A stretch of 64,000 bases of DNA, taken from the sequence record MG752970.1, one strand, 5' to 3'. The notes beneath the pieces are model-generated. The model was given only the letters and a program-made list of their open reading frames with translations. It was not told the DNA's origin and made no database searches. Below are positions 20,269-48,217 of the stretch, in pieces. The number at the start of each line of letters is the position of its first letter. Position 1 is the stretch's first letter. The position numbers and the translations under genes are program-made.

Positions 20269-20293
20269 AAGGGTAGCCTAGGCTACCCTTTTT
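20269..20293 (+). terminator. Terminator ending accessory block
   Basis: Perfect palindrome AAGGGTAGCCTAGGCTACCCTT plus TTT. Confidence 0.85.
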
Positions 20294-20347: not shown

Positions 20348-21829
20348 ATGTCCGAAATCCTTTCAACAACAATATCAGACCTTATTGAAGAATCCAGACG
20401 TATCAGTCCAACGTTTGAAAGAATCTCACCTACTTCAGCTAAGATTAGCTGGGTCTATCCGTCAACGTTTAGAACCTTAAATGGGGTTTTGGTTCTCCTA
20501 AGTGATTCTGCATTTAATCCATCTAATTATCCAACCGATACGGTTCGGTACACCCCTTCTACGGTTTTCTCATCGCCTGCAGACAAAATTGGTGCCGCAG
20601 TAGTTGTAGGTGCTTTCTACAATGATGTAACAACCCTAAGTGTTACTGTAACGGGATTAGATCCTGCTGTCATCTATTACGCATCTGTTCATGGTGTTTC
20701 AAATGTCATCCAGTACTATCAGAATGGTGTCCAGACATACCCAATCGAAGTAGATGTAGATCCATACACAGGTAACATCCCTGAGTCTGAGACACCTCCT
20801 GCGAACCCTACACTGGGTACGGTGTACTACAACAAATTCAACAATCAGGTTCTAATGTGGACTGGCTCTATGTGGGTACAGGCTTCAGCAGGAACTGTCC
20901 TAACTGGAACACAATTTCCGGTGGCAGGAACGGACGGCGAGTTCTTCTACCACACTAATAGACGAATTCTCTACATATGCAATGCTGGTCAGTGGACTGA
21001 GGCAAACACTGCTGACAGAGGTCAGCAAATGCAAAACAAGAAGGACATAGGAACTGATACTTCTTACGATGCTCGTCTGCAGCTTATCAATATCCTAAAG
21101 GCACAGCTGGGTTGGCCATCTATGTGCGTAGAGCTGAATGAAAACCAGTTTGACGTTGCTATTGATAATGCAATTCAAGAGCTGCGTCGCCGCACTGATG
21201 TTGCCTATCGCCGCCGCTACATTATCATGCGCCTGCAACCTGCGCAAGAAGTTTACTACCTGAATGACCCAACGGTTGGAACTACAAAGGTTACAGAGGT
21301 TTTAAAGATTCACCGTACAAACTATTTTGGTGTTCTTACATCTGGTGATAATGCAATTTACAGCCAGGTCATTTTCAACAACCTGTTCAACAATGGAAGT
21401 GATACAAATCTGGTATCAATTCACTTGCTGGCGGCATATGGAAATGAGTTTACTAAACTATTTGCGGGTGAACTTCAATTCAATTGGGATGAAACCACCC
21501 GTGAACTCTACGTTCACCGCAAGGTTGCTGGAAACGAACCTGTTGTTCTAGAGGTTTCAATGGAACGCACTGAGCAAGAATTGCTCATAGACAGATGGAC
21601 CACACAATGGATTCAAGCGTGGGCTCTTTCAGAATGCAAGTACATGCTGGGTATTATTCGTACAAAATATGCTAATCTTCCTGGAGCAAACGGTGGAATT
21701 AGCATGAATGGTGACATGTTGATTCAGGAAGCGAATACAGATCAACAAGAGTGCCTGCGTCAGATTGCTAACTATGAAGTCGGAAACGGTGGAAGTGAGT
21801 TCGGCAATTGGACCTTTACAATGGGTTAA
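20348..21829 (+). CDS. gp13: Neck protein gp13-like with long N-terminal extension
   Basis: LGWPSMCVELNENQFDVAIDNAI, WIQAWALSECK, GIIRTKY, LPGANGGISMNG. Confidence 0.88.
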   Translation: MSEILSTTISDLIEESRRISPTFERISPTSAKISWVYPSTFRTLNGVLVLLSDSAFNPSNYPTDTVRYTPSTVFSSPADKIGAAVVVGAFYNDVTTLSVTVTGLDPAVIYYASVHGVSNVIQYYQNGVQTYPIEVDVDPYTGNIPESETPPANPTLGTVYYNKFNNQVLMWTGSMWVQASAGTVLTGTQFPVAGTDGEFFYHTNRRILYICNAGQWTEANTADRGQQMQNKKDIGTDTSYDARLQLINILKAQLGWPSMCVELNENQFDVAIDNAIQELRRRTDVAYRRRYIIMRLQPAQEVYYLNDPTVGTTKVTEVLKIHRTNYFGVLTSGDNAIYSQVIFNNLFNNGSDTNLVSIHLLAAYGNEFTKLFAGELQFNWDETTRELYVHRKVAGNEPVVLEVSMERTEQELLIDRWTTQWIQAWALSECKYMLGIIRTKYANLPGANGGISMNGDMLIQEANTDQQECLRQIANYEVGNGGSEFGNWTFTMG

Positions 21830-21835
21830 TTTCAT

Positions 21836-23368
21836 ATGGCTATTCAACAACCAGATTGCAAATATCAAGCCCCCGAGCTGGATATTGGAACTCTTGATTT
21901 ATCTACCGATGATTGTATTGTCCAACATGACAACCAATACATCAACAATCTTACTGCCGAACATTTGCAGATCGCAGGAGCGCCAGTTAACGTCTTTAAA
22001 ATGTTGGGGGTGCATGAACAGGGATCTACCATTGATCTTGTAGGATCTGGTTATCCAATTTCGTCTGGAACTTCGGCAGGATACAACGCTCTGAACGCGT
22101 TCAACAGTTCCGGTGGAACTTGGAGAAGCATTCAGACTGGTGCCGCAGTTGTTACGACTCCCGCTTACATTGGATATTCGTTTGGTACCAAGAAAACGAA
22201 AGTAGGCAATCAGGAAAGATACGCACCGTCACAGCCCGTAAGATATCATGTTACGACAATTAAGTTACGTCAAGGTGATTTGCAACAAAATCGAGCTCTT
22301 CAAATTAAGGTTGAAAGATCGGATGACGGAATAAACTGGGTGCTTGTTGATTATGTTAACTTAGCAAATGATAATACTTTGCAGACGTTGAACATAAAAC
22401 AGTCGACGATGATGCAGCAATGGAGAATCAGTCCCACAATTTTTAATGGTGGCAGCGCCGATGCATGGGAAGTTGCTGAAATTCACTTACTAGATTATAG
22501 TGCAACGTCGCTTGATAATATTCAGGATTTCGTATTACTTGAGAATCGTGACAGAGATTATTCAACTACTTCAATTCAATTGAAGTGCTCATATGACATG
22601 AATGAGTCGATGACTGATCTAGCAAAATTTGGTATCATGCTTCCAGATCAGTACAACTTTGTAGTATCGTTTGCAATGATGGTGCAAAAACTAGGTCGAC
22701 CTATTGTTGTTGGCGATATAGTTGAGCTTCCATCGCAACTTCAATACGATGCAAATTTGAATTGCGTACGTAAGTATCTAGAAGTAACAGATACTATGTG
22801 GTCATCTGAAGGATTTACTCCAAGCTGGTATCCAACGCTGTTTAAATTTGTGGCTGTTCCTGCACTTGCAACCCAAGAAACACGAGATATTTTTGGAACT
22901 GCCAAGGATTACAAGAAGAGTGGTGGATCGATCAACGATTTCTTGAATGGAAATATTCCAATTGATCTTCTTAATGTGAAAGCATCCGATGATATTCAAC
23001 AACAATCTGCTGAGATGGTTCCAGAACGAGGATCTGACGTATCCGATGTCGTAAGTGGAATGGATATTAGAGACACTCGAGGATCATATGATGGAACTGA
23101 TTTATATGTTGAGGATGCAATTCCACCAAACAATCAACCTTATACCGAATTGATTAATCAATGGCCAGCCAATCCGCAGGACGGTGATTGGCATCGAATG
23201 CTGCAAGATCCTGCTCTCAGAATACCTGCAGTACTATACAGATATAACGGTGTAAAGAAGCGTTGGATTAAAGTTGAAGTCGACCGTAGAGATCCATACA
23301 TCTCATACAAGCCTACCATAAATAACATCGTGACTTCTAACACGCAATTTAACATTAATGAGAAGTGA
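21836..23368 (+). CDS. gp14: Neck protein gp14-like with discoidin (F5/8C)-like insertion
   Basis: EHLQIAGAPVNVFK, LAKFGI, LGRPIVVGDIV; insert with SSGGTW...IKVERSDDGINW...WRISP. Confidence 0.8.
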   Translation: MAIQQPDCKYQAPELDIGTLDLSTDDCIVQHDNQYINNLTAEHLQIAGAPVNVFKMLGVHEQGSTIDLVGSGYPISSGTSAGYNALNAFNSSGGTWRSIQTGAAVVTTPAYIGYSFGTKKTKVGNQERYAPSQPVRYHVTTIKLRQGDLQQNRALQIKVERSDDGINWVLVDYVNLANDNTLQTLNIKQSTMMQQWRISPTIFNGGSADAWEVAEIHLLDYSATSLDNIQDFVLLENRDRDYSTTSIQLKCSYDMNESMTDLAKFGIMLPDQYNFVVSFAMMVQKLGRPIVVGDIVELPSQLQYDANLNCVRKYLEVTDTMWSSEGFTPSWYPTLFKFVAVPALATQETRDIFGTAKDYKKSGGSINDFLNGNIPIDLLNVKASDDIQQQSAEMVPERGSDVSDVVSGMDIRDTRGSYDGTDLYVEDAIPPNNQPYTELINQWPANPQDGDWHRMLQDPALRIPAVLYRYNGVKKRWIKVEVDRRDPYISYKPTINNIVTSNTQFNINEK

Positions 23369-23369
23369 A

Positions 23370-24233
23370 ATGACATTTAAGGCATTTTTGCAAGAAACAA
23401 CCATGTCAGATACTAGCAGAGTTATTTCATTAAAAACTGCTGCAGAATTAGTACGTCAACATTGCATGGATGCTTACAATCAAACACGTAATGAACACGC
23501 GGTTTTATTTAGAGGAATTCGTTCGGTAAGTGGTAAGAACGCTCTAGCATTGGAAACAGATAGGCATGTAAGAACTGCGGCATTCACCTATAACATTGTC
23601 AATTTGCTGATGAGCAATCTTCCTGTATGGTCTGATTATCCAAAACGAAACTTATCGGCAGTATGCACAAATAGTGAAAGACGCGCAAACGATTATTCAA
23701 ATAATCCCGGTGAGGTGTTTGTAGTATTTCCTTTTAATGGGACCAAGATAGGACAGTGTAGTGAATACGATTTGTGGGAATCATTTCAAAGACTTGCACA
23801 CATTGGAACGGTAGACTTTTTTGCTGAAATTCTTACTGATTTTATGAGTGAGATGGTTGACAAAAATTTCTATACTTATTCTAAAAACAGTCAGTATGAC
23901 AAGGTTGTTGCATCCTTCGCAAAATTGGATGCTTATGCTAAGAAAATTGGCATAGAAAAGTTTAAGGAAAAAGCTAAAGAGAATGAGAATGGTGAAGTTT
24001 TGTTTAGCAAGTACAAATACGCATTGGCCGATTACGATGGAAATTTTCTAGAATCACTATCAAAACTTCTTGATCCAACAAAGAATGGTTTTAAGATTAC
24101 CACTGCTGGTCACATAGAAAAAAGTACGGATAGACTTGGTAAAGAAATGTGGTTTTCAGGTAAAGCTGTAGCGGTACCTGTTGATCTCATGGACAAATTT
24201 ATGGATTTGATGGATAAGTATGACAACGTTTAA
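23370..24233 (+). CDS. Putative ADP-ribosyltransferase-fold protein, paralogue 1
   Basis: MTFKAFLQE; LFRG, YPKRNLSAVCT, EMW. Confidence 0.55.
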   Translation: MTFKAFLQETTMSDTSRVISLKTAAELVRQHCMDAYNQTRNEHAVLFRGIRSVSGKNALALETDRHVRTAAFTYNIVNLLMSNLPVWSDYPKRNLSAVCTNSERRANDYSNNPGEVFVVFPFNGTKIGQCSEYDLWESFQRLAHIGTVDFFAEILTDFMSEMVDKNFYTYSKNSQYDKVVASFAKLDAYAKKIGIEKFKEKAKENENGEVLFSKYKYALADYDGNFLESLSKLLDPTKNGFKITTAGHIEKSTDRLGKEMWFSGKAVAVPVDLMDKFMDLMDKYDNV

Positions 24234-25137
24234 AGAATATTTGACAGAAATGACGAGGTCTGAACGATCGGAACTCGTCAAATCTACGTTTAAAGGTCTT
24301 ACTAAAGATCAAACTCTAGAATACGTGAAGACGCATTGTAAGAAGGCTCTTGCAGACTTCAAGGCGGGAAGAATTATGTTTCGTGGAATTAAAACGAAGG
24401 ATGAATACGGATTTATCAATCCATCATCAATAGAACGACAATCCGCAAACACATACAATCTTTACAACATTATTATTAGTGAGTCGTCGAATTGGGCCAA
24501 ATATCCCAAGCGTAACAAATCTGCAATATGCACTATTGACACATGGAAAGCTCAAAGATATTCATACAATGGAATGCCTCACATGGTTTTTCCGGTAGAT
24601 GGATTCTTGCTAGGTGTGTGCCCTGATCATGACATTTACGTTTCATTCAATCACACCCTTAAGGAACTACTTCATATAGCTACTCCAACATTACGAGTTT
24701 TTAATGGAATAGTTCTGGCAATCCTGGTTATGTCCGGTGTTGTGGGTTCAGCATCTACTGATTTTGCAGAATTGTTGGACAATGGATCTAGATCTGATGA
24801 AGTCTTTCACGATGCAGCAAAAGTAAAGCATCTATTTTCTGAATTTGATCGTAGATATGCCAAAGAAAAAAATCTCGATAAGCTTCTTGCCACGGTGAAG
24901 TTATCCGGTGATGGTAATGGTGCTGCAGTTACTTTAGCATTGCGTTTGTTGACTAACTATAAAGGTGATCTTTGGAAATTATGCTCACAAATTTTAGATC
25001 CAACTGCCAATGATTTTGTGTTGTTGAAGAACCAAATTCCAGAACCAGGCAAATCAAAAGAGGTTTGGACTGATTCTGATTGTATCGTAATTGAGGCTAC
25101 AGATGAAAATATCGAAGCTCTCATGTTACTAAAATGA
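24220..25137 (+). CDS. Putative ADP-ribosyltransferase-fold protein, paralogue 2
   Basis: MTTFKEYLTE; MFRG, YPKRNKSAICT, EVW. Confidence 0.55.
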   Translation: MTTFKEYLTEMTRSERSELVKSTFKGLTKDQTLEYVKTHCKKALADFKAGRIMFRGIKTKDEYGFINPSSIERQSANTYNLYNIIISESSNWAKYPKRNKSAICTIDTWKAQRYSYNGMPHMVFPVDGFLLGVCPDHDIYVSFNHTLKELLHIATPTLRVFNGIVLAILVMSGVVGSASTDFAELLDNGSRSDEVFHDAAKVKHLFSEFDRRYAKEKNLDKLLATVKLSGDGNGAAVTLALRLLTNYKGDLWKLCSQILDPTANDFVLLKNQIPEPGKSKEVWTDSDCIVIEATDENIEALMLLK

Positions 25138-25145
25138 GAAAACTT

Positions 25146-26009
25146 ATGAAGCTTGAAGATTTATTTGAAACCTCAGAGCAAGTAGAGAAGCTTGTCTCTA
25201 ATTATAAGAAAATTTCTGAAGAGACTGTTCTCAAATATTTGAAATCAGATTTTAAAAATTCATTTGACGTTATTTCCGAAACACCGTTATATAGGGGTCT
25301 ACCCTCGAATGAAGCATTCTTCTTCGTTGATCCTAAACAATTATCTAGAACCGAATTCCAGTCAAATCTTTATACGCTCATTATCGATAACAGTGAGGAA
25401 TGGGAAAATTTCCCAAAAAGATCTGAAAGTGTAATAGCTACAACGGACTTCCAAGATACTAAAACATATGGAACACCGTATTACGTAATTCCTATGGATG
25501 GATTTAAATTAGGGTGCTGCTCTGCGGATGAAATAGACGACTCATTCCAGAACGCAATGAAGGAGGTCGGTAAGGCCTCTCTGAGTGAATTTTGCGATTC
25601 GATGAAGGATCTATTGTGGCTCGTGACCGGGTGTAACCGGGAGGACCTATACACCTCAGAGGCAACATTACGTAAAGTATGTAGAAGATTTGATGCGGCA
25701 TACAGTGGAACGCACATCAAAGAATTTTTAGAAAGCAAATCCATAACATCTAAGAACAAAATGTTTGATGAAACTATGGATGATATCGGATTAGTAATGT
25801 TGCATTACTTTGATGTTCATTACGAGGGTGATGTATACGCATGGATTGAGCATATCATTAATCCAGAAGAAAATGCATTATTTGTTGAGGATAATTACGT
25901 CCCGGGTGGATACGTGGAAGTCTGGACAGATTCTCCGTGCATTTTTGTTCATGAAAAGAAGTTTAAAGAAATCCAGACAAAACTTGGCCGCAATACTAAT
26001 GGTGGATAA
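25146..26009 (+). CDS. Putative ADP-ribosyltransferase-fold protein, paralogue 3
   Basis: MKLEDLFE (start may be 25134); LYRG, FPKRSESVIAT, EVW. Confidence 0.55.
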   Translation: MKLEDLFETSEQVEKLVSNYKKISEETVLKYLKSDFKNSFDVISETPLYRGLPSNEAFFFVDPKQLSRTEFQSNLYTLIIDNSEEWENFPKRSESVIATTDFQDTKTYGTPYYVIPMDGFKLGCCSADEIDDSFQNAMKEVGKASLSEFCDSMKDLLWLVTGCNREDLYTSEATLRKVCRRFDAAYSGTHIKEFLESKSITSKNKMFDETMDDIGLVMLHYFDVHYEGDVYAWIEHIINPEENALFVEDNYVPGGYVEVWTDSPCIFVHEKKFKEIQTKLGRNTNGG

Positions 26010-26012
26010 ATA
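26006..26012 (+). promoter_or_regulatory. Late promoter box ATAAATA
   Basis: Overlaps upstream stop, precedes gp15. Confidence 0.5.
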
Positions 26013-26016
26013 AAAC

Positions 26017-26829
26017 ATGATTACTGGATATTTCTATCAACAGCAACTGAAGAGATACATAATTCAGTTCGCGGCAATTTTTGCAGGTCTCAAAGTTAAA
26101 ACCGGAAAAGGAAAAGACGGAGAGATTACTGACATCGACGTTCCTATAAGTTATGGGTCGAGAGATCGAGTTGTGTCTGCAATTGGAGCAGGATTTACGC
26201 AAAATAAACCAGTTGTAATCCCAACTATGACGTGTTATATGCAAGGTATAGATATTGCCTTGGATAGAATGAAGGGTACAGGTTTTCTTGATAGACGGGT
26301 TCATTTGCAAGCTGGTGGAATTTTCCCAGATGATCTAAAAGTTGTTGAGCGTTATATGCCAATTCCGTATGATTTGACATTTGAGCTCAACCTAGTAGCA
26401 TCCAATTCTGATCAAATGTATCAAATGCTAGAACAGATATTGGTCATGTTTGATCCTATTCTACAAATACAAACATCGGACGCTCCTTTTGATTGGACGA
26501 AAATTACATGTGTGACTCTTCAATCTGCTGGAAACGAGGAAAATTGGCCTCTTGGAACCGATAGAAGATTGATAACATGGACGTTAACATTTAAAGTGGA
26601 TGCGTATCTTGGTATTCCAGCAGATTTACGCAATCAAATTGTGAGAAACATTATCATTCAGTATGGTGACCTAGATGGTTTTACTATGAATGAATACTCG
26701 GAAGATGGAGAGATGGTTCCGTTTGTTGATCAATATGCAACATCAATAGTGCAGGGATCTCCTCTATATTATGACGGCGAGGCAGACTATGATGGAGTCT
26801 ATCAGTCGGGTGCAGGATCTGTCGAATAA
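26017..26829 (+). CDS. gp15: Tail sheath stabiliser / tail terminator
   Basis: GYFYQQQLKRYIIQFAAIF, VPISYGSR, PIPYDLTFEL, QMLEQIL..F.P. Confidence 0.9.
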   Translation: MITGYFYQQQLKRYIIQFAAIFAGLKVKTGKGKDGEITDIDVPISYGSRDRVVSAIGAGFTQNKPVVIPTMTCYMQGIDIALDRMKGTGFLDRRVHLQAGGIFPDDLKVVERYMPIPYDLTFELNLVASNSDQMYQMLEQILVMFDPILQIQTSDAPFDWTKITCVTLQSAGNEENWPLGTDRRLITWTLTFKVDAYLGIPADLRNQIVRNIIIQYGDLDGFTMNEYSEDGEMVPFVDQYATSIVQGSPLYYDGEADYDGVYQSGAGSVE

Positions 26830-26845
26830 CGTGGAAGATTAAAAT

Positions 26846-29170
26846 ATGGCAAATTTGGTTGAGGTTCCACAGTGGGAACCTAGTATATTTCAGATCGACA
26901 TAACAACTAGAGTTCTAGGTGGTACTGGAGGTCCAGCAAATACACAAGCCCAACAGCTCGCAAATAGATCGGCGTATCTTAAAAGTCAGGTTGATGGAAT
27001 ACTGGCAACTCTTGCGGCGGGCGTTCCTCATCATACACACGATGCTGCTGACATAATTTCGGGAGTTCTAGATCCTGCTCGTATGGGTCTAGGTGTGGCA
27101 AATAATTCAACATATCTGCGTGGCGATGGTGTCTGGGCGACAGTATCTCAGTATGCCCTTCCAACTGCTTCGTCAAGCGTTATAGGTGGAATTAAAGTAG
27201 GATCTGGACTGTCGATAGATGGTACCGGAATTTTATCTACCAATGTTACCACCGTAGCCGGAAGAACAGGAAATATTGTCTTGGCAGTCGCAGATGTATC
27301 TGATGCTGCATCTTCGTCGGCACTTGCTGCTTCATCTGGATCCTCATTAATTGGATTTATTTCTAGCGACACCGGATCATTGCTCAGAACAGTTCAAACG
27401 AGGTTAAGAGATTTCTATAATCTTAAGGATTATGGAGCAGTTGGTGATGGTGTTACGGATGATACCGCAGCGGTTCAGGCTGCAATTACGGCGGCCGTTA
27501 CCAAGAAAAAGGCATTGTATGTTCCTGCGGGTAATTACATGCTTAATAGTGGCATCACTATTAATGGCGTACTCACCATGTACGGTGACGGTATGCAGAA
27601 TTCCATCTTTACATACGTCCCTGTTAATGGTAATGCCTTCACATGGACAGCAGATGGATCGTATTCAAGCATTCGTGGAATAAAGCTAGCCCATACGGCT
27701 ACTAGAGTACTTGGTAACACCGCAACAGGATTTAAAACGTATACAGGCGCAGCTTGCGTGTTTTATCTATTTGATGAAGTATGGGTTGATGGTTTCCAGC
27801 TGTGGGGCTATGATGTAAATGATAGCTTTAATTGCAAATTCACAAATGGTAGAATTCGCAACAACGGTGTCCAGGCCACATTAGCCGGTGGAGGAACTAA
27901 CGGTCAGGGCGGAGGTATGCATCTATCACGCATAACTTTCACTGGGGCTGCAACGACAGGTAATGATTATAGCAACATGTATATCACCGGAAATAACTGG
28001 GGTATCCAAGTTGAACCATCAGGAAACAATAACAAGGCTTTTAACACTAGATTCGACGTGTGTATCTTCGAGTCGAACTATATCGGTGTAGATCTGCGCA
28101 ACCTTGGTACGGGTGGAATGGGTCGTTATCAGTTCCTGAACACATGTTATGGTGAGGCCAACATCTTCGCCCTCGCGATGCTGGATGAAGGTAGCAGTGT
28201 TGCATGCTATCAGAACAACACCACAGCAGGCACAGGTACTCCACCTTCCACATCGTTGGATGGTCCGGATGGTATTAACTTCACTGCTCGTTTCGTTGAG
28301 GATCGCCCATCACGTTTCCGTATTGGTAACCAGGGCGCGGCGCCGTATGATCGTTCAGTGGCTACGGCCTTCTCTGTCGATAAGGGAGAGACGACCAACT
28401 ATGTGAGCACTATCCGTGTGCTGAATCAAGGTACTCTGCAGCTTGTTGGAGGTGCTGGTTCGGCTGTTCCTGCTGTTACTATTAACTCTGGTTCAGGTAA
28501 CCCGGAAGCGTCGATTACGGCTAACAATGGCTCCCTGTACATGCGTTATAACGGTGTTGACCTAGGCACAACGTTGTACCTCAAGGTGAGTGGCACGGGT
28601 AATACTGGTTGGTTACCTCTAGGACCACAATATGGTCCTACCGCATCCCGTCCTACTTCTGCTGCTACAAACAAGGGTCAGTTCTACTACGATACTGATA
28701 TTTTGCGTGTAGTTACGGCAAACGGCTCTGGTGCTTGGAGAGAATATAACGGTTTATCTTCAGTAACTGGAACATATGCAAATATTCCGGCTGGCATAAC
28801 TGGTGCAAATTATTACGCTACTGATTTGTTTGCCAACTTCACATATGATGGCACTAGATGGGGTATGCAAACTCTACCAGTGTCATTTGTTTCGGTGGCT
28901 GCAGCGGGTAATGCTACTATTCCTACACGCGGTGGTCATGTTCTAGGAACTACAACTGGATCTGCAGTTGCTACATTCACTTTGAATCTTCCATCTGGCA
29001 CAAATGCGGCATCCGGTGATAGAGCTAGATTTACTACATCGTGCGCAATCACTGCCTTGACGGTATCATCTAGTGCGTCTATCGTAAATGCGCCATCTGC
29101 AATGTCAGCTGGACAGACAATTGAATTTGTTTACAATGGTTCTAGCACCACATGGTTTAGAACAGCATAA
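26846..29170 (+). CDS. Tail fibre/spike with pectate-lyase-like beta-helix
   Basis: NLKDYGAVGDGVTDDTAAVQAAI...LYVPAGNY; N-terminus shared with 29191 gene. Confidence 0.85.
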   Translation: MANLVEVPQWEPSIFQIDITTRVLGGTGGPANTQAQQLANRSAYLKSQVDGILATLAAGVPHHTHDAADIISGVLDPARMGLGVANNSTYLRGDGVWATVSQYALPTASSSVIGGIKVGSGLSIDGTGILSTNVTTVAGRTGNIVLAVADVSDAASSSALAASSGSSLIGFISSDTGSLLRTVQTRLRDFYNLKDYGAVGDGVTDDTAAVQAAITAAVTKKKALYVPAGNYMLNSGITINGVLTMYGDGMQNSIFTYVPVNGNAFTWTADGSYSSIRGIKLAHTATRVLGNTATGFKTYTGAACVFYLFDEVWVDGFQLWGYDVNDSFNCKFTNGRIRNNGVQATLAGGGTNGQGGGMHLSRITFTGAATTGNDYSNMYITGNNWGIQVEPSGNNNKAFNTRFDVCIFESNYIGVDLRNLGTGGMGRYQFLNTCYGEANIFALAMLDEGSSVACYQNNTTAGTGTPPSTSLDGPDGINFTARFVEDRPSRFRIGNQGAAPYDRSVATAFSVDKGETTNYVSTIRVLNQGTLQLVGGAGSAVPAVTINSGSGNPEASITANNGSLYMRYNGVDLGTTLYLKVSGTGNTGWLPLGPQYGPTASRPTSAATNKGQFYYDTDILRVVTANGSGAWREYNGLSSVTGTYANIPAGITGANYYATDLFANFTYDGTRWGMQTLPVSFVSVAAAGNATIPTRGGHVLGTTTGSAVATFTLNLPSGTNAASGDRARFTTSCAITALTVSSSASIVNAPSAMSAGQTIEFVYNGSSTTWFRTA

Positions 29171-29190
29171 TTATTAAACGGAGAATATGA

Positions 29191-29904
29191 ATGGCAAATT
29201 TGGTAGAGGTATCCCAGTGGGAGCCTTCCGTATTTCAGGTTGATATAACAACCAGAGTTTTGGGTGGAACGGGTGGCCCAGCAAATACGCAAGCCCAACA
29301 GCTTGCAAATAGAACGACATATTTGCGGGATCAAGTTAACACCATCTTGGCAACTTTGGCTGCAGGGGTGCCACATCATACTCACGATGCTGCTGATATT
29401 ATCACTGGTGTTATTCCGGTCTCGCATTTGGGGGTTGGAACGGCTGATACTACCAAATTCTTGCGTGGTGATGGTGCATGGGCGCTGCCTCCAACATATA
29501 CGCTTCAAACGGCGTCTAGTTCAGTTCTCGGCGGCGTGAAAGTTGGATCTGGTCTGTCAATAGATGGAAGTGGAGTGTTGTCAACGACGGAACTTTTGAA
29601 TGTTGTCACTCAGACAACATCATATTCTATTCCGAATGCATTAACAAATAATTCGCACATACGAATGAATTCATCAGCCGGAGTGACTGTTACTGTTCCA
29701 TCAGATGCTACCTATGCATTTCCGATCGGTACATCATTTTCTATTCGTCAAGTTGGATCTGGTCAAGTTACGGTTGCTGGAACATCTACATTTGATTTGC
29801 CAGCTAGTACAGTTGCTAAAACAAGAGTGCAAGGAAGTACTATTGCAATTATTAAGGTTGCGGCAGATGAATGGGAAGTAACAGGTGATTTAGCATCAGC
29901 ATAA
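29191..29904 (+). CDS. Short fibre/adaptor protein
   Basis: First ~130 aa near-duplicate of 26846 gene; different C-terminal beta domain. Confidence 0.8.
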   Translation: MANLVEVSQWEPSVFQVDITTRVLGGTGGPANTQAQQLANRTTYLRDQVNTILATLAAGVPHHTHDAADIITGVIPVSHLGVGTADTTKFLRGDGAWALPPTYTLQTASSSVLGGVKVGSGLSIDGSGVLSTTELLNVVTQTTSYSIPNALTNNSHIRMNSSAGVTVTVPSDATYAFPIGTSFSIRQVGSGQVTVAGTSTFDLPASTVAKTRVQGSTIAIIKVAADEWEVTGDLASA

Positions 29905-29916
29905 TAGAGCATTAAT

Positions 29917-30306
29917 ATGACGTCATTAGTTAGCTTTGCATCGCAATTGACATGGTCGCCCGGTCAGTCATTGAGTGTTTCTTTTCACACATGGAAAGGA
30001 ACTACTATTATTCAACCGAATGCGGTGCGAGAGCTTACGATTTTTTATCCAGCTAATAAATCTGCTACTGGTTTAATAGTGACTGATTTATATGGTCATT
30101 CTGTTACCCCCGCGTATGTGAATGAATCGTATAAAAATGATTCATCAACCCAAATGCGAATGATGCTAGTAGGTCTTTCTACGGCGATGGGTGTGCAAGT
30201 GAGTTTAACACTTATAGATAGAGTATCTAATGTGTCATATTTGCAGCTTACAGATGGATCTGCTTTAACATTGATGACGGGTTTAACTCTTGATTTGCAA
30301 ATATAA
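29917..30306 (+). CDS. Hypothetical structural protein
   Basis: In fibre operon. Confidence 0.65.
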   Translation: MTSLVSFASQLTWSPGQSLSVSFHTWKGTTIIQPNAVRELTIFYPANKSATGLIVTDLYGHSVTPAYVNESYKNDSSTQMRMMLVGLSTAMGVQVSLTLIDRVSNVSYLQLTDGSALTLMTGLTLDLQI

Positions 30307-30319
30307 TTGAACAAGCGAT

Positions 30320-31018
30320 ATGTCGAAATTAACAGAACTTAGCACAGCCTCAACATTAACTGGATCAGAGTTGGTATATGTGGTTCAGAGCGGGGCAGAT
30401 AGATCAACCACTTTACAGTCAATCTTAGCGCTTGCACCTAGTAAGGCACCAACTGACGGTAAAGCATATGTATCCAAAAATGGAGCGTGGATAGATTTAA
30501 GTACGCTGGCACCATCGCTTGCGCCTACAGATGGTAAATCTTACGTATCCAAGAATAATGCGTGGATAGATTTAAGTACGGTTGCTGCTAGTGTTGCTCC
30601 ATCCGATGGAAATGCGTATGTATCCAAGAATGGTTCTTGGGTAAATTTGAGCACACTACTTCCTGCACCAACTCTTTCATCATACTCATATACGTTTCCA
30701 TCTATAGCTGCCGGTCAAACATATTCTACCACTTTAAATTCGTTGCCGGTATTTTCGGATCAGTCGGTAATTTTCTTCGTTATAAGCATGAGTGTGACGG
30801 CAACAACGTCTTATACATTTGAATTGGTTGAAGTAGATTCCAGCAATAATGAAAGTGTTGTGTATCAGTCTGCGACTCAAACTACATCATTTAAAGATAC
30901 TCAACCATTTACATTTGACAGAATGAACATAGCAAATACCTTGGTTTTAAGAATAATAAATTCATCATCTTCGGCAATCACCGGGGCATCAGTAAGAATG
31001 GTTATGGCAGGAGTGTAA
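30320..31018 (+). CDS. Structural protein with three foldon-like repeats
   Basis: MSKLTELSTAS N-terminus; 3x APxDGxxYVSKNxxWxxLST. Confidence 0.75.
   Translation: MSKLTELSTASTLTGSELVYVVQSGADRSTTLQSILALAPSKAPTDGKAYVSKNGAWIDLSTLAPSLAPTDGKSYVSKNNAWIDLSTVAASVAPSDGNAYVSKNGSWVNLSTLLPAPTLSSYSYTFPSIAAGQTYSTTLNSLPVFSDQSVIFFVISMSVTATTSYTFELVEVDSSNNESVVYQSATQTTSFKDTQPFTFDRMNIANTLVLRIINSSSSAITGASVRMVMAGV
30446..30658 (+). repeat. Three tandem 75-nt repeats
   Basis: Visible at protein and DNA level. Confidence 0.85.
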
Positions 31019-31019
31019 T

Positions 31020-33929
31020 ATGGCGCGTCCTCCATTTCCAACTATAAATGATTTTGTTCAAATTTACCCAGGTGGTTTTAATGCTGGGATTGATCCTGTA
31101 AATTTGAGAGACACGTATTATCCGGTATCAGATTTCACTCTGTCTGATAAATTTACCATGCCTGGTAGTAGCACACAGATAAATGGAGCATGGTCTACAG
31201 ACTCTGGAGATCTAGGTCTTCCAGATAGTCAGAAGGAATCGAGATCATTCTGTTTAAAGGGAAAAGCTTCTATTCAGGTAAACGGTACCGCAATCATTTT
31301 GCGAGTGCAATTAAATTCTGGATGGGGAACTGCCAGTGTGTATGTGGATGGAGTGAAACCATCAACAATATCAGGACTTGCAGCCTATTCGGATACTATC
31401 AATTGTAATGCTGATAGCTATCCTGGAACGGTAGGAACTGTTTATCATGATATCGTAATAGCAGATGGTCTGTCTTCTGGAAACCATACGGTAGACATTT
31501 ATGCAAATACGACTGGAACGCAAACATGGGTATCGTTATCAGCAGCAAAAACTAGATCGTATTCGCAAAAACCATACGTGTTTAAGGGTTGGAAATCACC
31601 AGTAAGTACTGGATTGAATTCTAGAACGCTGTCGTTTAAAAATTTGAGTAGTGATACATTTAAAAATGTCACATTAACTGTTCCCGCAAACTTGGTGAAA
31701 CAGGATGGCACGTCATATACGTCACCAATTTCAATCGGTGATATAGCGCCCGGCGCACAGTATGATTTTGCCTATAGTATAGATGGAAGTACTCAACCGG
31801 ATAGTACGTCATATATAGCTACGTTTTCGGCTCTATATCCAGATCCTCTTGGTTCTACAAATTTATCGTCTACAAATACGTATGACGTCAATAGCTCGGC
31901 TATTGTTTTTACTGGTGCCTGGAATAAAGATCAAGGTGCACCTAATTCAACATGGAGAGCATTTACCACAGGAACCAACCAAAAAGCATCATTTGTAACA
32001 GATGCTACATCATTTGTGATAACTCTTCAGAAAGAATTTGGTTGGGGTAGTGCAAAGGTTATGGTTGGTTCAACGCAATATGCCACACTGACCAGCAATG
32101 ATGCAGTAGGTGGAGGATTCTTACAAGATGTTACTGTGAGTGGTCTTCCTTCGGGGACAAAAACAATTGACATTATTTCAACTACGGCAGCAGCAAAACC
32201 GTTTGTGTTTACAAAACTGTCGTACACGAAAACGTCAACATATTCTCAGGTTAATGAGAATGTAGTATTGAATTACGCATACTCTTATGTTCCACCATTT
32301 GCTCCTAAAAATCCTAGATTGCAGGGAGGCATGGTTACGTGGGATGCGTCCAATAGAACTGATTTAGATATTACGATTCCTAGAGATAATTCTAATCTTA
32401 CTGAGTATAGAGTTTATTCTAGATTTCCAACATATTGCGTATATTATTTCCAGGGTAAACAGGACATATTATCTCAGTACGATATTGTAATCATAGAACC
32501 ATCTGCCGTGTCGCGTCAACAGGTAAAGGCATGGCAGGATAAAGGAATCAAAGTTTTCGGTTATGTATCATTTGGTGAAGAGGATGGAGAAAGACCAGAT
32601 ATTTTTGATTTAGCTAGTTCAGCCCTCGGTCCGCATAAAGACGATCAAGGCGGTCCTGGAGGATACGCATCTTACTATAACAAAGGTGGTAATCTATTTG
32701 GTGAGGCAAGCGAATGTCAATTAGATAACCAGCGGGTTCTGGGGACTAAAACATGCGCTGTTGGAAACCCAAAATATTTTACTGGAACTGGAAGATGCAG
32801 TACATCATGCACTAATGACTGGCGAGATGGTTATATAACTCAGCAAGCAGGAGGAACATGTAAGGCAGGGTTCACTATCCATAATAATTGGATTAGAGAC
32901 GCCATGACGGCATGTTCCAATAAATCATGTCCTAGTTATACTCCTGTCAATCAGAAGTGTACCCAATACGTTCCTAGCGATGTTAAATGGGGCCAGGATT
33001 ATAGCATGGCGACTCCGAATTATCCCGACCAAAATGGAATATGGGGTTCTTCATTTATTAATCCTATAGCTCCACGCTGGAAACAAAAACTGCAAAATTT
33101 CTACATGCCAACAGTTTTTGGTACTGGTCAGAATTTTACAGAAACTTACACCTGCGCTTCTCATACTAATTCAGATGGCTCTACTAAACTGGTATTCCGT
33201 TTGAATAATTATCCGATTGACGATAATGAAACGTTTACGGTTAAGAGCGCAGATGGAACTATTGAGTATAAGAAGAACTTGGATTATAGCTATGATGCTA
33301 CTGCTGGTGTTATAGCAATAGAGCCTACTGCGGGGGTGGATGCTGGATACACTGCACCTGTTGCTGGAACACAATTCAGTGTGACTTATCAGAAGAAAGG
33401 ATTGCAGTGCGATGGAATTTTTATGGATACGGTAGATACGGTTGATGTTTACCCATCTGAGCAGTTCAATCAAGCTATGGCTGATATGATTAACTCTCTT
33501 AAAGCTAGCAATCCTACAAAATATTTCTGTAGCAATAGAGGATTTAGTGTTTTAGACAAGATCATTTCATCATGTTCGCACGTGATGTTCGAAACCTTTC
33601 TATCTGAATATAACTGGGATACCGGTCAATATTATGAAATTACGGATCCAGATTCGGTGTCATTCAATGATGGGATAAAGAAGCAATTGCGAAATCTTAG
33701 AAGACAACATAAGTTTGATGTGTTTGCTCTTAATTATTGCGATAACGGACCGTCAGGTGATGCTCTGCGTCAGAAAATAAATGATCAATGCTATGCTGAA
33801 GGTTATATGAGTTGGACATCTACTATCGATCTAAATGACCCACTTCCGGTTATTCCAATGAATGTGAATCCGGGAGGTGCTATAAGATCTAATACGTGGA
33901 TGATGCTAAGAAAATCTAAGGTTCAATAA
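31020..33929 (+). CDS. Putative virion-associated alpha-1,4-galactosaminidase-like hydrolase (GH114/GH166)
   Basis: YDIVIIEP, GYVSFGEE, DGIFMDTVD, NRGF, VMFE, VFALNYC; N-terminal beta-sandwich modules. Confidence 0.75.
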   Translation: MARPPFPTINDFVQIYPGGFNAGIDPVNLRDTYYPVSDFTLSDKFTMPGSSTQINGAWSTDSGDLGLPDSQKESRSFCLKGKASIQVNGTAIILRVQLNSGWGTASVYVDGVKPSTISGLAAYSDTINCNADSYPGTVGTVYHDIVIADGLSSGNHTVDIYANTTGTQTWVSLSAAKTRSYSQKPYVFKGWKSPVSTGLNSRTLSFKNLSSDTFKNVTLTVPANLVKQDGTSYTSPISIGDIAPGAQYDFAYSIDGSTQPDSTSYIATFSALYPDPLGSTNLSSTNTYDVNSSAIVFTGAWNKDQGAPNSTWRAFTTGTNQKASFVTDATSFVITLQKEFGWGSAKVMVGSTQYATLTSNDAVGGGFLQDVTVSGLPSGTKTIDIISTTAAAKPFVFTKLSYTKTSTYSQVNENVVLNYAYSYVPPFAPKNPRLQGGMVTWDASNRTDLDITIPRDNSNLTEYRVYSRFPTYCVYYFQGKQDILSQYDIVIIEPSAVSRQQVKAWQDKGIKVFGYVSFGEEDGERPDIFDLASSALGPHKDDQGGPGGYASYYNKGGNLFGEASECQLDNQRVLGTKTCAVGNPKYFTGTGRCSTSCTNDWRDGYITQQAGGTCKAGFTIHNNWIRDAMTACSNKSCPSYTPVNQKCTQYVPSDVKWGQDYSMATPNYPDQNGIWGSSFINPIAPRWKQKLQNFYMPTVFGTGQNFTETYTCASHTNSDGSTKLVFRLNNYPIDDNETFTVKSADGTIEYKKNLDYSYDATAGVIAIEPTAGVDAGYTAPVAGTQFSVTYQKKGLQCDGIFMDTVDTVDVYPSEQFNQAMADMINSLKASNPTKYFCSNRGFSVLDKIISSCSHVMFETFLSEYNWDTGQYYEITDPDSVSFNDGIKKQLRNLRRQHKFDVFALNYCDNGPSGDALRQKINDQCYAEGYMSWTSTIDLNDPLPVIPMNVNPGGAIRSNTWMMLRKSKVQ

Positions 33930-33939
33930 GGGTGATGAT

Positions 33940-34188
33940 ATGTCGGATATAAATCCTAATGAAGTAAATCCATTTCTTACAGATATTCCTGTTGTTTCTA
34001 TTGTCACACAGGTTAGATTGGTAAACGGCGTTGAAGTTGAGACGCCGGTTTCTGATTGTATTAGAGTTTGGGGTAGATTGAATGGGGCTGCAAAAAGAGA
34101 TGCACACAAAAATCCTATAATCCCTAATTCTCAGCCTATTAGAATTATACCTGATCCGTACGGAATGGATAAACAGAGAAATTTCTAA
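33940..34188 (+). CDS. Hypothetical protein
   Basis: AAGGG RBS. Confidence 0.6.
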   Translation: MSDINPNEVNPFLTDIPVVSIVTQVRLVNGVEVETPVSDCIRVWGRLNGAAKRDAHKNPIIPNSQPIRIIPDPYGMDKQRNF

Positions 34189-34202
34189 CGAGTATAGAAA
34201 CC

Positions 34203-34209
34203 ATAAATA
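34203..34209 (+). promoter_or_regulatory. Late promoter box ATAAATA
   Basis: Upstream of 34240 gene. Confidence 0.65.
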
Positions 34210-34239
34210 ACAGAATATAGAACACTAGAGGATTCATCC

Positions 34240-34818
34240 ATGAATGATTGTCAAAACATCCAAGCTACAAGTCGAATCGTAGCAAGTTATCTCGACACTG
34301 GTGAGGTTGTCGCTGATTTCACTAATGCGGTTCATCCGCAAAATATGGCTAGAATCATTGCAAGAGGTCTAGCTCGTGAAACTAACGGTTGGATTCATAA
34401 AATGGCTTTTGGTAATGGCGGAACTCACATTAACTCGGGTTTAACTATTACTTATCTTACGCCGAACACCGTTGGTACTGCAGCATCTTTGTATAATCAA
34501 ACATACGAAGAAATTATTGATGATTCCAACGTTTCGGTTGGTCCAGGTAATTCGTGTATTTCATCGGCTTCTCCTGATCCAGCTATAACATCGGTTGTTA
34601 CGTGTACTTGCGTTATAGCGGCAAATGAACCGTCCGGTCAGGCAAATTCAGATGGTACAACTACGGATCCAGATAGTCTGTACACATTTGATGAATTGGG
34701 GTTGTTTACGGCTGATGCGCAACCATTAATGCTTACTCATGCTATTTTTTCTCCAATTGAAAAAACAGGTAATAGAGCAATGCTTATCAACTATACGCTG
34801 ACAATCTCAGTTAACTGA
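34240..34818 (+). CDS. Baseplate/tail-collar-type structural protein
   Basis: MAFGNGGT, FDELGLF, HAIFSPIEKT pattern of myophage baseplate wedge proteins. Confidence 0.7.
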   Translation: MNDCQNIQATSRIVASYLDTGEVVADFTNAVHPQNMARIIARGLARETNGWIHKMAFGNGGTHINSGLTITYLTPNTVGTAASLYNQTYEEIIDDSNVSVGPGNSCISSASPDPAITSVVTCTCVIAANEPSGQANSDGTTTDPDSLYTFDELGLFTADAQPLMLTHAIFSPIEKTGNRAMLINYTLTISVN

Positions 34819-45976: not shown

Positions 45977-48217
45977 ATGGCTTTAAAGTACGCAGAGGGA
46001 TTTGAAACATCTGTAGATGATAGTGATATTCGCGCACGCGGATGGTTGTACGCACCTACGAAGCGTTATGCAGGTTTACCTCCTTCAAAAACGGCAGCCG
46101 TTGGATCAATAGGTCTACGTAGATTTGTGAATAACGGCAGCGATGCTGCCACCACTGTTGGGGCGACCGGTGCAGCTGATTTGGGGTATTACAATACGGG
46201 TATAACGGTTAATCAGGCCTGGTCCGCCGGAGGTTTTACATTTGGATCGTCTGCCACTCATTATAGCGGCTCTATGGTTCAGATAGGTGCAGTAGGAACT
46301 GGTGGTCCATCCGGTCAAGCACTAGGATGTATAGATTTTGATGGTACAAATTATTGGGCTTGTACGTCTGCGACTAAAATTGCAAAATCTACCGATTTTA
46401 TTACGTGGACGAATACTACAGCAACCCCAACGGGCTTAACTCTATCATCGACGGTATCGTTCATGGGTTCCGGTGTAGTGATGGTTGTTCCTCAAACTGC
46501 AACACCAACCACGTTAAGTGTTGCATACACTAGTAACGGTGGAACTAGCTGGTCCACGCAAACACTGGCCACTGGAATTAGTACAACAACAGGTGCTCAA
46601 TATGGAATTGGATTTGCAACTGGAAATCCAACATATCCCCATGCAATCTTAATTGGGATTAGTGATAACTCTGCGGCAAATGGTCTCTATATAGGAACTC
46701 TGGGTGGAACGTTTACCCAAGTAATTGGTGGTACGGCTTACACGATGGGATTCTTTGTTCCTAGACCTGTGGTTATTAATGGATACATTTATGTAACTGA
46801 TGCGTCAAATAATGCGACATCCGCGAATTTTTATTCTGCACCCGTATCCGGGGCAATAAACACAGCGGGAGCCTGGACTAAATGGTCTCTTGGAAATGTG
46901 CCTAACCCTTCTCAAATATCGTATTTTCAGGCGGCAAACGTTTTCATGATATCATCTGTCACGAACGGTTTGTTCACTATTCCTAACACTGGTGGTACAG
47001 GTACTCCTACTCCCCCAACGTCGGCAACAACTGCATCGAATCCTTACTCAGCAGCAGGAGTATTCGGAATAGCATCCAGTGGATCTACTGCGGTTATTTT
47101 TCCAGATGTGTTTAATTCTATCAGTGCTAACAATACGGTTTTCACATCAACCGATGCGTCAACCTGGACTCCTCAATTCAAAATCTGGCCAGACTTGGGT
47201 GGAACGAATAGAAATGGTTGGTGTACGGTGTTTTATGACGGGACGCAATATGTTGCTGTAGGATCTGTAGGATCTACAGCCCACTCCCAAATCATATGTA
47301 CGACGGATGATGGTGTAAACAATTGGCGTATCAGATACGCATCTGATACTTCAAGCAATGGTACAACAGGTGGATTTAGTGGATTGGGTGTGTGCACTGC
47401 AACTGCTGCTCCGGTATCGGGGTCAACATGGACAGCGGGAACCACTGCTGCATGGTTAAATGCGAGCGTCCCTTCTGCAGGATCATCTACTATTAGCTTT
47501 TTCACTACGTCAAACAGTGCAACCGCGGCATCCACCGCAGCTGTTTCGACATCCACTACGCTAACTCATTATTACGAAATAAAAGCGGTTGCCACTGCTA
47601 CTGCTAATACATTTAATATCAGTTGGTATGTAGATGGGGCATTGAAAGCCACAAGTACAAGTATCCTTCTTGGATCTTCTACAACGGATACTACAAGTTT
47701 GCTGATACTCAACATTCCTAGATGTGGTGCTTGGCAGCAATTCGATGATATGTACTTAACGCTTGATAACGGCACCGGATTACAAGGACCTGCGGGCCCC
47801 ATCTACATTACAGCACGCAGACCGACAACGGATGTGCAGGATCAATGGTCTCCTAATGGCACGGCAACAAATTCAACTGCAACCAATCAGACTGCATTAA
47901 GCAGTAGAAAAGACAGATATTCTTCAACATATACTGATGGCGCAAAAGATGTTTATTCGTCCACCGATTCTACTCCATCCAGTTATAAAGTAAAAGCAGT
48001 TCAGATAGAGGGATATTTTTCGCAATTGAGTACTGTTGCTCCAACTGCTAAATTGAGCTTGATTAGTAGTGGCAATCAGGTTGATGCGTCAACTGCAACG
48101 GTAAATAGCAGTCAGGTATTCACATCGGCGATAGTTGAACAAAATCCAAATGGTAACGTTGCTTGGACTCCAGGAACGGTAAATAGTTCACAGTTTGCAA
48201 TTACTAAGGTGACTTAA
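45977..48217 (+). CDS. Putative fibre tip/adhesin, paralogue A
   Basis: AAGGAG RBS supports start 45977; beta-rich, SxDxxxW-type repeats. Confidence 0.8.
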   Translation: MALKYAEGFETSVDDSDIRARGWLYAPTKRYAGLPPSKTAAVGSIGLRRFVNNGSDAATTVGATGAADLGYYNTGITVNQAWSAGGFTFGSSATHYSGSMVQIGAVGTGGPSGQALGCIDFDGTNYWACTSATKIAKSTDFITWTNTTATPTGLTLSSTVSFMGSGVVMVVPQTATPTTLSVAYTSNGGTSWSTQTLATGISTTTGAQYGIGFATGNPTYPHAILIGISDNSAANGLYIGTLGGTFTQVIGGTAYTMGFFVPRPVVINGYIYVTDASNNATSANFYSAPVSGAINTAGAWTKWSLGNVPNPSQISYFQAANVFMISSVTNGLFTIPNTGGTGTPTPPTSATTASNPYSAAGVFGIASSGSTAVIFPDVFNSISANNTVFTSTDASTWTPQFKIWPDLGGTNRNGWCTVFYDGTQYVAVGSVGSTAHSQIICTTDDGVNNWRIRYASDTSSNGTTGGFSGLGVCTATAAPVSGSTWTAGTTAAWLNASVPSAGSSTISFFTTSNSATAASTAAVSTSTTLTHYYEIKAVATATANTFNISWYVDGALKATSTSILLGSSTTDTTSLLILNIPRCGAWQQFDDMYLTLDNGTGLQGPAGPIYITARRPTTDVQDQWSPNGTATNSTATNQTALSSRKDRYSSTYTDGAKDVYSSTDSTPSSYKVKAVQIEGYFSQLSTVAPTAKLSLISSGNQVDASTATVNSSQVFTSAIVEQNPNGNVAWTPGTVNSSQFAITKVT

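Follow-up and report, generated by a model that had tools for sequence, protein, structure and literature searches.

The stretch analysed here is a window of 64,000 nucleotides from the genome of Ralstonia phage RsoM2USA (window coordinates are those of record MG752970.1 minus 248,000). It contains the gene RsoM2USA_411, a single open reading frame (ORF) of 969 amino acids (aa) that starts with ATG two bases past the stop codon of the preceding gene and encodes a protein of ~106 kDa. The translated product was 100% identical to RsoM2USA_411 (AVH85339.1), which is labelled 'hypothetical protein' in GenBank and which matches over its full length the PHROGs group phrog_37372, a group of unknown function. 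The protein has 17 cysteines over its entire length, and no recognisable signal peptide was found in it. An earlier note on this DNA had described the product as a hydrolase resembling glycoside hydrolase (GH) families 114 and 166.

The phmmer search against all PDB sequences matched PelA alone (5tcb, E value 6.6e-9), in the two stretches 483-531 and 798-942, which cover beta2-beta3 and beta4-beta8 of the phage barrel. The profile made from 16 full-length relatives also matched PelA alone among the PDB sequences, with an E value of 1.1e-10. A structural model of residues 445-969 was then obtained with AlphaFold2 (AF2) at a predicted local distance difference test (pLDDT) score of 94.5 and a predicted template modelling score (pTM) of 0.91. 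When this model was compared with the PDB using Foldseek, the first rank was taken by the PelA hydrolase (5tcb, GH166; E 1.6e-14, template modelling score (TM) 0.78). The GH191 structures 9ep5, 9euz and 2aam followed (E ~3e-9, TM ~0.70), and the third place was taken by Ega3 of GH114 (6oj1; E 1e-7, TM 0.69); the TM scores of GH191 and Ega3 together spanned 0.65-0.71. The matches after Ega3 were barrels with inserted domains (SusG, pyruvate kinase). In the fold search of BFVD, the only meaningful match was the homologue encoded by the Pseudomonas fluorescens phage SCYZ1.

Searching 1.84 billion representative proteins with a profile gave 1187 relatives at E <= 1e-3, including ~26 full-length cluster representatives and hundreds of compact proteins of 270-500 aa. 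Three of the compact bacterial proteins, which belong to the Pfam family PF03537 and, with profile E values of 1e-36 to 1e-38, come closest to the barrel among cellular proteins, matched PelA across the whole barrel (P0083, 6e-28; P0066, 1e-17; P0067, 1e-15). The same three matched GH191 merely at ~1e-3 and did not match Ega3. Because the nearest compact relatives behave in this way, we place the phage barrel, judging by sequence, in the PelA-like (GH166-like) branch and not in GH114 proper. The GH166 half of the earlier assignment therefore held, with the PelA hydrolase domain being closest by both sequence and fold, while the GH114 half came down to a match in fold. GH114 proper was rejected, as Ega3 was missing from both PDB sequence searches; GH191 was rejected as well, having neither an NCBIfam (TIGR01370) nor a PDB sequence match and being reached by fold only. 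A peptidoglycan hydrolase or endolysin was also considered and rejected, since each significant match of the barrel was an endo-galactosaminidase.

The residues required for catalysis in this clan are present in the phage protein. E218 of PelA is aligned to E858 of RsoM2USA_411, and D160, located 58 residues upstream of E218 in the same alignment, pairs with D803. The D160A/E218A double mutant is the hydrolase-dead form of PelA (PMC12022489), and the Asp serves as the nucleophile and the Glu as the acid/base across GH114, GH135, GH166 and GH191 (PMC12054363). The difference between the PDB entries 5tsy (the E218A variant) and 5tcb falls at the Glu aligned to E858. In the AF2 model, D803 and E858 are both found at the C-terminal ends of strands, namely beta4 and beta6, whereas the absence of the catalytic acids from a model had been named in the earlier note as an argument against an enzyme of this kind. 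Beta7 ends at Y906, and beta5 is followed by the motif NRGF (839-842). D803 was conserved in 42/42 full-length relatives and 92/92 aligned compact relatives, E858 in 42/42 and 91/91, and N839 in 42/42 and 92/92; the NRGF and Y906 motifs were invariant among the 42 full-length relatives. Besides the common barrel, the beta4 Asp and the beta6 Glu, the motifs GE-x-D, F-x-D-T-x-D, NRGF and (D/N)-Y are common to RsoM2USA_411 and the PelA hydrolases (P. aeruginosa 5tcb/5tsy; P. thermotolerans 9cgy), and the compact PF03537 proteins, PelA-like themselves, have all the catalytic motifs in common with the phage protein.

The (beta/alpha)8 barrel of RsoM2USA_411 differs from that of its compact relatives by two insertions. 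In the domain table, the compact relatives aligned to residues 470-555, 664-700 and 796-943 with merely 2-6 residues of their own between the pieces; therefore, the phage barrel is interrupted by two clean insertions, A and B, with helix alpha3 standing between them. This agrees with the previous description of TIM-barrel motifs split by a Cys-rich segment and a beta domain, and draws the split more sharply. The Cys-rich segment is likewise real, except that the count is eight (residues 566, 579, 593, 597, 614, 632, 637 and 647) and not about ten as had been estimated. All eight cysteines were invariant in the alignment of 16 sequences and at least 90% conserved in the alignment of 49. Insert A as a whole is conserved as the barrel is, with a mean identity of 59% across the family; the range for the barrel together with insert A was 59-64%, compared with 40% for insert B and 31-46% for the N-terminal modules.

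In the first AF2 run, which was performed on the whole protein with 16 sequences, insert A had a pLDDT of ~30; the second run, on residues 445-969 with 49 sequences, raised it to ~95. The modelled insert is mostly irregular with little regular secondary structure and is located in the beta3-alpha3 region of the barrel. Other families of the clan have at beta3 an insertion with which they cover the substrate groove. As insert A extends this insertion, it is probably a part of the groove. The eight cysteines include no CxxC pairs and are accompanied by no conserved His, and the sequence therefore leans towards disulfides. Insert A gave no Pfam match, and the Cys-rich segment, when compared by itself with the PDB sequences, had no match even at E 10. 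In a word-indexed protein search with residues 550-668, the Cys module was met inside the RsoM2USA_411 family only. It is missing from the sub-group of P0044, P0045, P0047 and P0055, which keeps the N-terminal modules and insert B, indicating that insert A is a discrete module; it is apparently missing from P0050 and P0053 too. Insert B showed a weak likeness to the Ig-like domains of tail proteins. Two family members have further changes in architecture: P0012 (1101 aa) contains another insertion of >100 aa nested within the Cys-rich insert, and P0044 (1296 aa) has an extra, uninterrupted PF03537 barrel at residues 1005-1239.

The first 444 aa of RsoM2USA_411 were modelled in the whole-protein AF2 run as three confident beta-sandwich modules, N1-N3, of which the first and the third are paralogues with 29% identity (E 5e-12). 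N2 is the part with the lowest mean identity across the family (31%). The earlier note had proposed ~470 aa of carbohydrate-binding-like modules here. The modules themselves were recovered, as three beta-sandwiches over ~444 aa; the carbohydrate-binding label corresponds to a resemblance in fold. N1 and N3 are weakly similar to the CE2_N jelly roll and resemble in fold, again weakly, malectin and carbohydrate-binding module (CBM)-type modules. When N1, N2, N3, insert A with alpha3, and insert B were run against Pfam separately, only sub-threshold CE2_N and WxL noise was obtained. About 30 N-terminal residues of RsoM2USA_411 are kept within the family, and they match no known anchor family in Pfam or PHROGs. 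The jelly-roll unit of N3 (residues ~286-391) was also seen as 7-8 tandem copies in P0153 (2315 aa) and P0154 (1428 aa), two large, unrelated and non-phage-like proteins in which it stands alongside CARDB, fn3 or trypsin domains.

The family of RsoM2USA_411 comprised at least 42 full-length members in the analysed set, ~26 of them representing distinct 50%-identity clusters. In a tblastn search of 50,697 phage records, only ORF189 of the Ralstonia phage phiRSL1 (55%), a homologue in the Ralstonia phage RSP15 (48%) and orf52 of SCYZ1 (41%) were found. The SCYZ1 gene is positioned after the major head and 'particle protein' genes. Family members were also present in two Ralstonia pickettii chromosomes; in the one that was examined, the gene lies in the tail module of a lambda-like prophage, one gene past a gpJ-like central fibre gene. 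Two full-length matches with 57% identity were found in Andreprevotia chitinilytica DSM 18519 (L005 3043-5925 and L006 8001-10883). Both are preceded by the same 339-aa ORF, and a third match in this organism (L007 8001-8777), which may be a different fusion or a damaged copy, covers the C-terminal quarter only. The protein P0027 (L004 198-4112) contains the whole family body, to whose C-terminus two baseplate-hub domains (PF09931 and PF09356) are joined; its gene is followed by NlpC/P60 and Phage-tail_3 genes, i.e., by a siphophage baseplate set. P0033 has a length similar to that of P0027, and a fusion of the same kind is possible there.

The hydrolase gene does not travel alone. A homologous ORF of ~80 aa was found directly 3' of it in every background examined; its identity was 59% in phiRSL1, 46% in R. 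pickettii and 37% in SCYZ1. When the remaining flanking genes, those preceding the hydrolase and those following the small ORF, were tested, they were not conserved between backgrounds; therefore, the moving unit is a two-gene cassette, which occurs in at least five unrelated phage backgrounds. The ~80-aa protein has no relative in Pfam or the PDB, and it is probably an assembly or attachment partner of the hydrolase. Other genes were noticed near the cassette in two of the backgrounds. The gene right after it in a T4-like metagenomic contig (L010 13346-13852) matches the Acb1 family (PF23474, a nuclease acting against the cyclic oligonucleotide-based antiphage signalling system), and in the R. 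pickettii prophage tail region the cassette is followed, a few genes further on, by a pair of adjacent radical-SAM genes (L013 15719-18081). The coordinates of the features described in this study are collected in Table 1.

Table 1. Features of RsoM2USA_411 and its surroundings; coordinates are those of the window unless a locus is named.
Feature	Position	Strand	Evidence
Whole gene RsoM2USA_411	31020..33929	+	ORF of 969 aa, identity to the record
Module N1, residues 1-185: conserved N-terminal peptide and jelly-roll beta-sandwich	31020..31574	+	pLDDT >90; CE2_N E 0.007; paralogous to N3
Module N2, residues 186-290: beta-sandwich, least conserved part	31575..31889	+	model, conservation
Module N3, residues 291-444: second jelly roll	31890..32351	+	model, paralogy to N1
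Barrel part a, residues 445-555: beta1-beta3; invariant G519, E520 and E521 directly after beta3	32352..32684	+	PelA match, model, alignment
Insert A, residues 556-663: 108 aa, Cys-rich, 8 invariant Cys	32685..33008	+	alignments, model
Barrel helix alpha3 segment, residues 664-700, common to compact relatives	33009..33119	+	model, domain table
Insert B, residues 701-795: all-beta domain between alpha3 and beta4	33120..33404	+	model, domain table
Barrel part b, residues 796-945: beta4-beta8; NRGF (839-842) after beta5; Y906 ending beta7	33405..33854	+	PelA match, model
Codon of D803 (aligned to PelA D160, putative nucleophile), C-terminal end of beta4	33426..33428	+	alignment, model
Codon of E858 (aligned to PelA E218, putative acid/base), C-terminal end of beta6	33591..33593	+	alignment, model
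RsoM2USA_412, conserved 82-aa ORF downstream of the hydrolase gene	33940..34188	+	homologues in other backgrounds
Co-directional neck, spike and fibre gene block with RsoM2USA_411	20348..34818	+	annotation, family matches
Homologous ~80-aa ORFs in other loci	L002 11912-12148; L003 12021-12278; L005 5933-6163; L010 13092-13334; L013 12898-13140		

In RsoM2USA, the gene lies inside a structural block, and its earlier placement in the fibre operon was borne out by the co-directional adaptor, sheath-stabiliser, tailspike-like, fibritin-like and tail-fibre genes around it. The block opens ~60 bases after a terminator-like, GC-rich hairpin of 9 bp followed by a T run (20269-20290, +), which was the sole convincing site of this type near the block start; promoter-like sites were no more frequent in the scan than in shuffled sequences. 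The order of the encoded proteins is a head-tail adaptor/neck protein, a virion structural protein, three paralogous proteins of ~300 aa, a tail-sheath stabiliser, a tailspike-like protein of 774 aa with a pectate-lyase-like beta-helix, a fibre-like and a fibritin-like protein, RsoM2USA_411, the 82-aa protein, and more fibre proteins, among them another protein with a beta-helix (1257 aa). The two beta-helix proteins both match PF12708 (26846-29170 and 37114-40887, +) and are candidate polysaccharide degraders that could handle other glycans, so the number of different glycan-cutting proteins in RsoM2USA may be three or more. The tailspike-like protein and the fibre-like protein encoded next to it (29191-29904, +) have their first ~60 residues in common and give the same PHROG N-terminal matches; this start looks like a common attachment domain. 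Two groups of paralogues were also observed: the three consecutive ORFs of 291-305 aa between the neck and sheath-stabiliser genes (23358-26009, +), all of which belong to phrog_12810, and two proteins of ~740 aa (45977-48217 and 48442-50640, +; phrog_30887) with a 70-aa ORF in between.

Taken together, these data lead us to regard it as somewhat probable that RsoM2USA_411 is a virion-displayed, GH166-like hydrolase that would cut a polymer of alpha-1,4-linked N-acetylgalactosamine (GalNAc) or galactosamine (GalN), with Pel as the most probable substrate. The barrel would act by a retaining mechanism as an endo-alpha-1,4-(N-acetyl)galactosaminidase, with D803 as the nucleophile and E858 as the acid/base. 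Cutting the Pel of the Ralstonia host would let the particle pass through the biofilm matrix or dock on it, and the three N-terminal modules might hold the polymer or fix the protein to the particle. Display on the virion is supported by the tail and fibre neighbours in RsoM2USA, by the positions of the homologues in SCYZ1 and in the R. pickettii prophage, and by the hub fusion of P0027. The characterised members of the clan (GH114, GH135, GH166 and GH191) cut alpha-1,4-GalN/GalNAc chains, namely those of Pel and fungal galactosaminogalactan (GAG) (PMC12054363, PMC12022489).

The hosts of the family fit Pel as a substrate. The named ones are R. solanacearum (three phages), R. pickettii (two chromosomes, of which the examined one carries the gene in a prophage) and P. 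fluorescens. For R. solanacearum (GMI1000, Molk2, IPO1609 and UW551), R. pickettii 12D and P. fluorescens Pf-5, a complete pel operon has been reported (PMC2864759), and these pel-carrying lineages match all named host lineages of the family, with Andreprevotia left out. The hint at a Pel-producing host in the earlier note is consistent with this, as the host belongs to the R. solanacearum species complex, for which pel operons have been reported (PMC2864759). The pattern of conservation within the family points in the same direction. Spikes specific for capsule or O-antigen usually have a variable catalytic part, which is the opposite of what was observed in the family of RsoM2USA_411. As conservation across phages is highest in the barrel and insert A, the sequences fit a polymer that is constant between hosts; a capsule or O-antigen, which varies from strain to strain, would fit them less well.

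Several points weigh against this interpretation. The resemblance to PelA is remote, with ~14% identity between the structurally aligned residues, and substrate specificity is unreadable from homology at such a distance. The score with the Pfam GH114 profile (PF03537) was 23.9 bits, below the cut-off of 27 bits, and the match covered residues 485-538 only, because the inserts break it; a precomputed table assigns PF03537.20 to the cluster of RsoM2USA_411, and its insert-free relatives score 45-84 bits. The NCBIfam search of RsoM2USA_411, TIGR01370 included, was empty. The 8-Cys module is odd for a protein that is synthesised and folded in the reducing cytoplasm. In the published analysis of the RsoM2USA virion, ORF411 is not listed among the proteins of the 10 abundant gel bands (PMC8504454), and no open virion proteomics on phiRSL1 ORF189 was found in the literature. 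In the T4-like metagenomic contig (L010, 140 kb), the cassette stands among replication and accessory genes and not among recognisable tail genes. Finally, GalNAc also occurs in EPS I, an abundant acidic polysaccharide of R. solanacearum (PMC3759889).

The last point bears on the main rival substrate. An equally active, virion-borne enzyme could have another GalNAc-containing surface polymer, i.e., EPS I, O-antigen or capsule, as its natural substrate, and we give this a minor yet appreciable chance. Among the extracellular polysaccharides of R. solanacearum, EPS I is the dominant one; it contains N-acetylgalactosamine, bacillosamine and galactosaminuronic acid (PMC3759889). The low identity to PelA would allow for such a substrate, and the large inserts placed by the model around the groove could have shifted the specificity. 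However, the family reaches beyond Ralstonia to the P. fluorescens phage, the Andreprevotia contigs and the T4-like contig, with a catalytic core that is 45-70% identical across these members, whereas EPS I is, to our knowledge, restricted to the R. solanacearum complex. This spread argues against EPS I, and so do the two neighbouring beta-helix proteins, which are candidate depolymerases in the same gene block. Moreover, every characterised member of the clan acts on alpha-1,4-GalN/GalNAc chains (PMC12054363).

The place of action may also be different from the one we prefer. The absence of ORF411 from the list of abundant virion bands (PMC8504454), the position of the cassette away from recognisable tail genes in L010 and an N-terminus in which no anchor domain belonging to a known family was recognised would all agree with a soluble late protein, an active PelA-like hydrolase that would be freed at lysis and would loosen the matrix surrounding the burst cell for the spread of progeny. 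We consider this quite unlikely, since the gene lies within tail or fibre modules in four independent backgrounds and, in one relative, the family body and a baseplate hub protein form a single polypeptide; in addition, a non-catalytic N-terminal part of 444 aa and a conserved small partner are typical for assembled fibre and spike proteins. Some phage receptor-binding proteins do descend from enzymes, and a groove closed by the inserts is conceivable; the barrel might then have been kept as a lectin that binds the polysaccharide and does not cut it. The invariance of the nucleophile, the acid/base, NRGF and Y906 in 42/42 relatives would be unexpected after a loss of catalysis, making such a receptor-binding protein very improbable. 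A bolder extension of the virion-borne Pel hydrolase, which we hold to be unlikely, is that the cassette is a mobile 'Pel-tropism' unit shared among unrelated phages of pel-carrying Proteobacteria. Pel would then be a primary receptor, in the way that Psl serves Clew-type phages, and the 8-Cys insert would be an oxidation- or metal-dependent lid of the groove that takes its active shape only outside the reducing cytoplasm.

Compared with PelA, the putative virion-borne hydrolase RsoM2USA_411 is phage-borne, has no signal peptide and lacks the deacetylase and other PelA domains. It carries 444 aa of N-terminal beta-sandwich modules instead, and has the 108-aa 8-Cys and 95-aa beta inserts where PelA has ~40 residues. 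The compact PF03537 proteins have an uninterrupted barrel without both inserts and without N-terminal modules, and the two of them that were examined are encoded by stand-alone chromosomal genes outside pel operons. GH191 (TM1410, Env-GH191) and GH114 Ega3 agree with the phage protein in fold, in the location of the catalytic pair and in the beta3 insertion site (PMC12054363), yet they are undetectable by sequence from RsoM2USA_411. The pyruvate kinase B domain and SusG with CBM58 are other examples of TIM barrels with a domain after beta3 over the active-site face; this is an analogy of architecture, as their inserts are not homologous to those of RsoM2USA_411 and their chemistry is different.

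In its likely role and in its position in the fibre block, RsoM2USA_411 resembles the beta-helix depolymerases of tailspikes and fibres. It differs from them in that its catalytic fold is a TIM barrel of the galactosaminidase clan and not a trimeric beta-helix, and in that its catalytic part is the most conserved and not the most variable one. Phages binding or degrading the exopolysaccharides alginate and Psl have been described, and the Psl-dependent Pseudomonas phages Clew-1 and PaStL1/PaStL2 bind or degrade the biofilm-matrix exopolysaccharide to infect (PMC12339003, PMC12627681); their polymer is Psl, not Pel, and their proteins are unrelated to RsoM2USA_411. No phage GH114/GH166 enzyme or Pel-directed phage protein was found in our searches of the open literature. 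What is new here is a putatively virion-borne depolymerase, a protein of a known sort, yet with a PelA-like TIM barrel and two nested inserts and encoded in a two-gene cassette.

Pel is among the most widespread polymers of the bacterial biofilm matrix. If RsoM2USA_411 cuts it, the Pel matrix would also be a phage target, which would partly explain how the jumbo phages of a major crop pathogen reach matrix-embedded cells. Few Pel/GAG hydrolases are known, and the enzyme would add a natural, robust and particle-borne one to them. With its two nested inserts and its travelling cassette, the family also illustrates clearly how domains are inserted and modules exchanged in the receptor-binding machinery.

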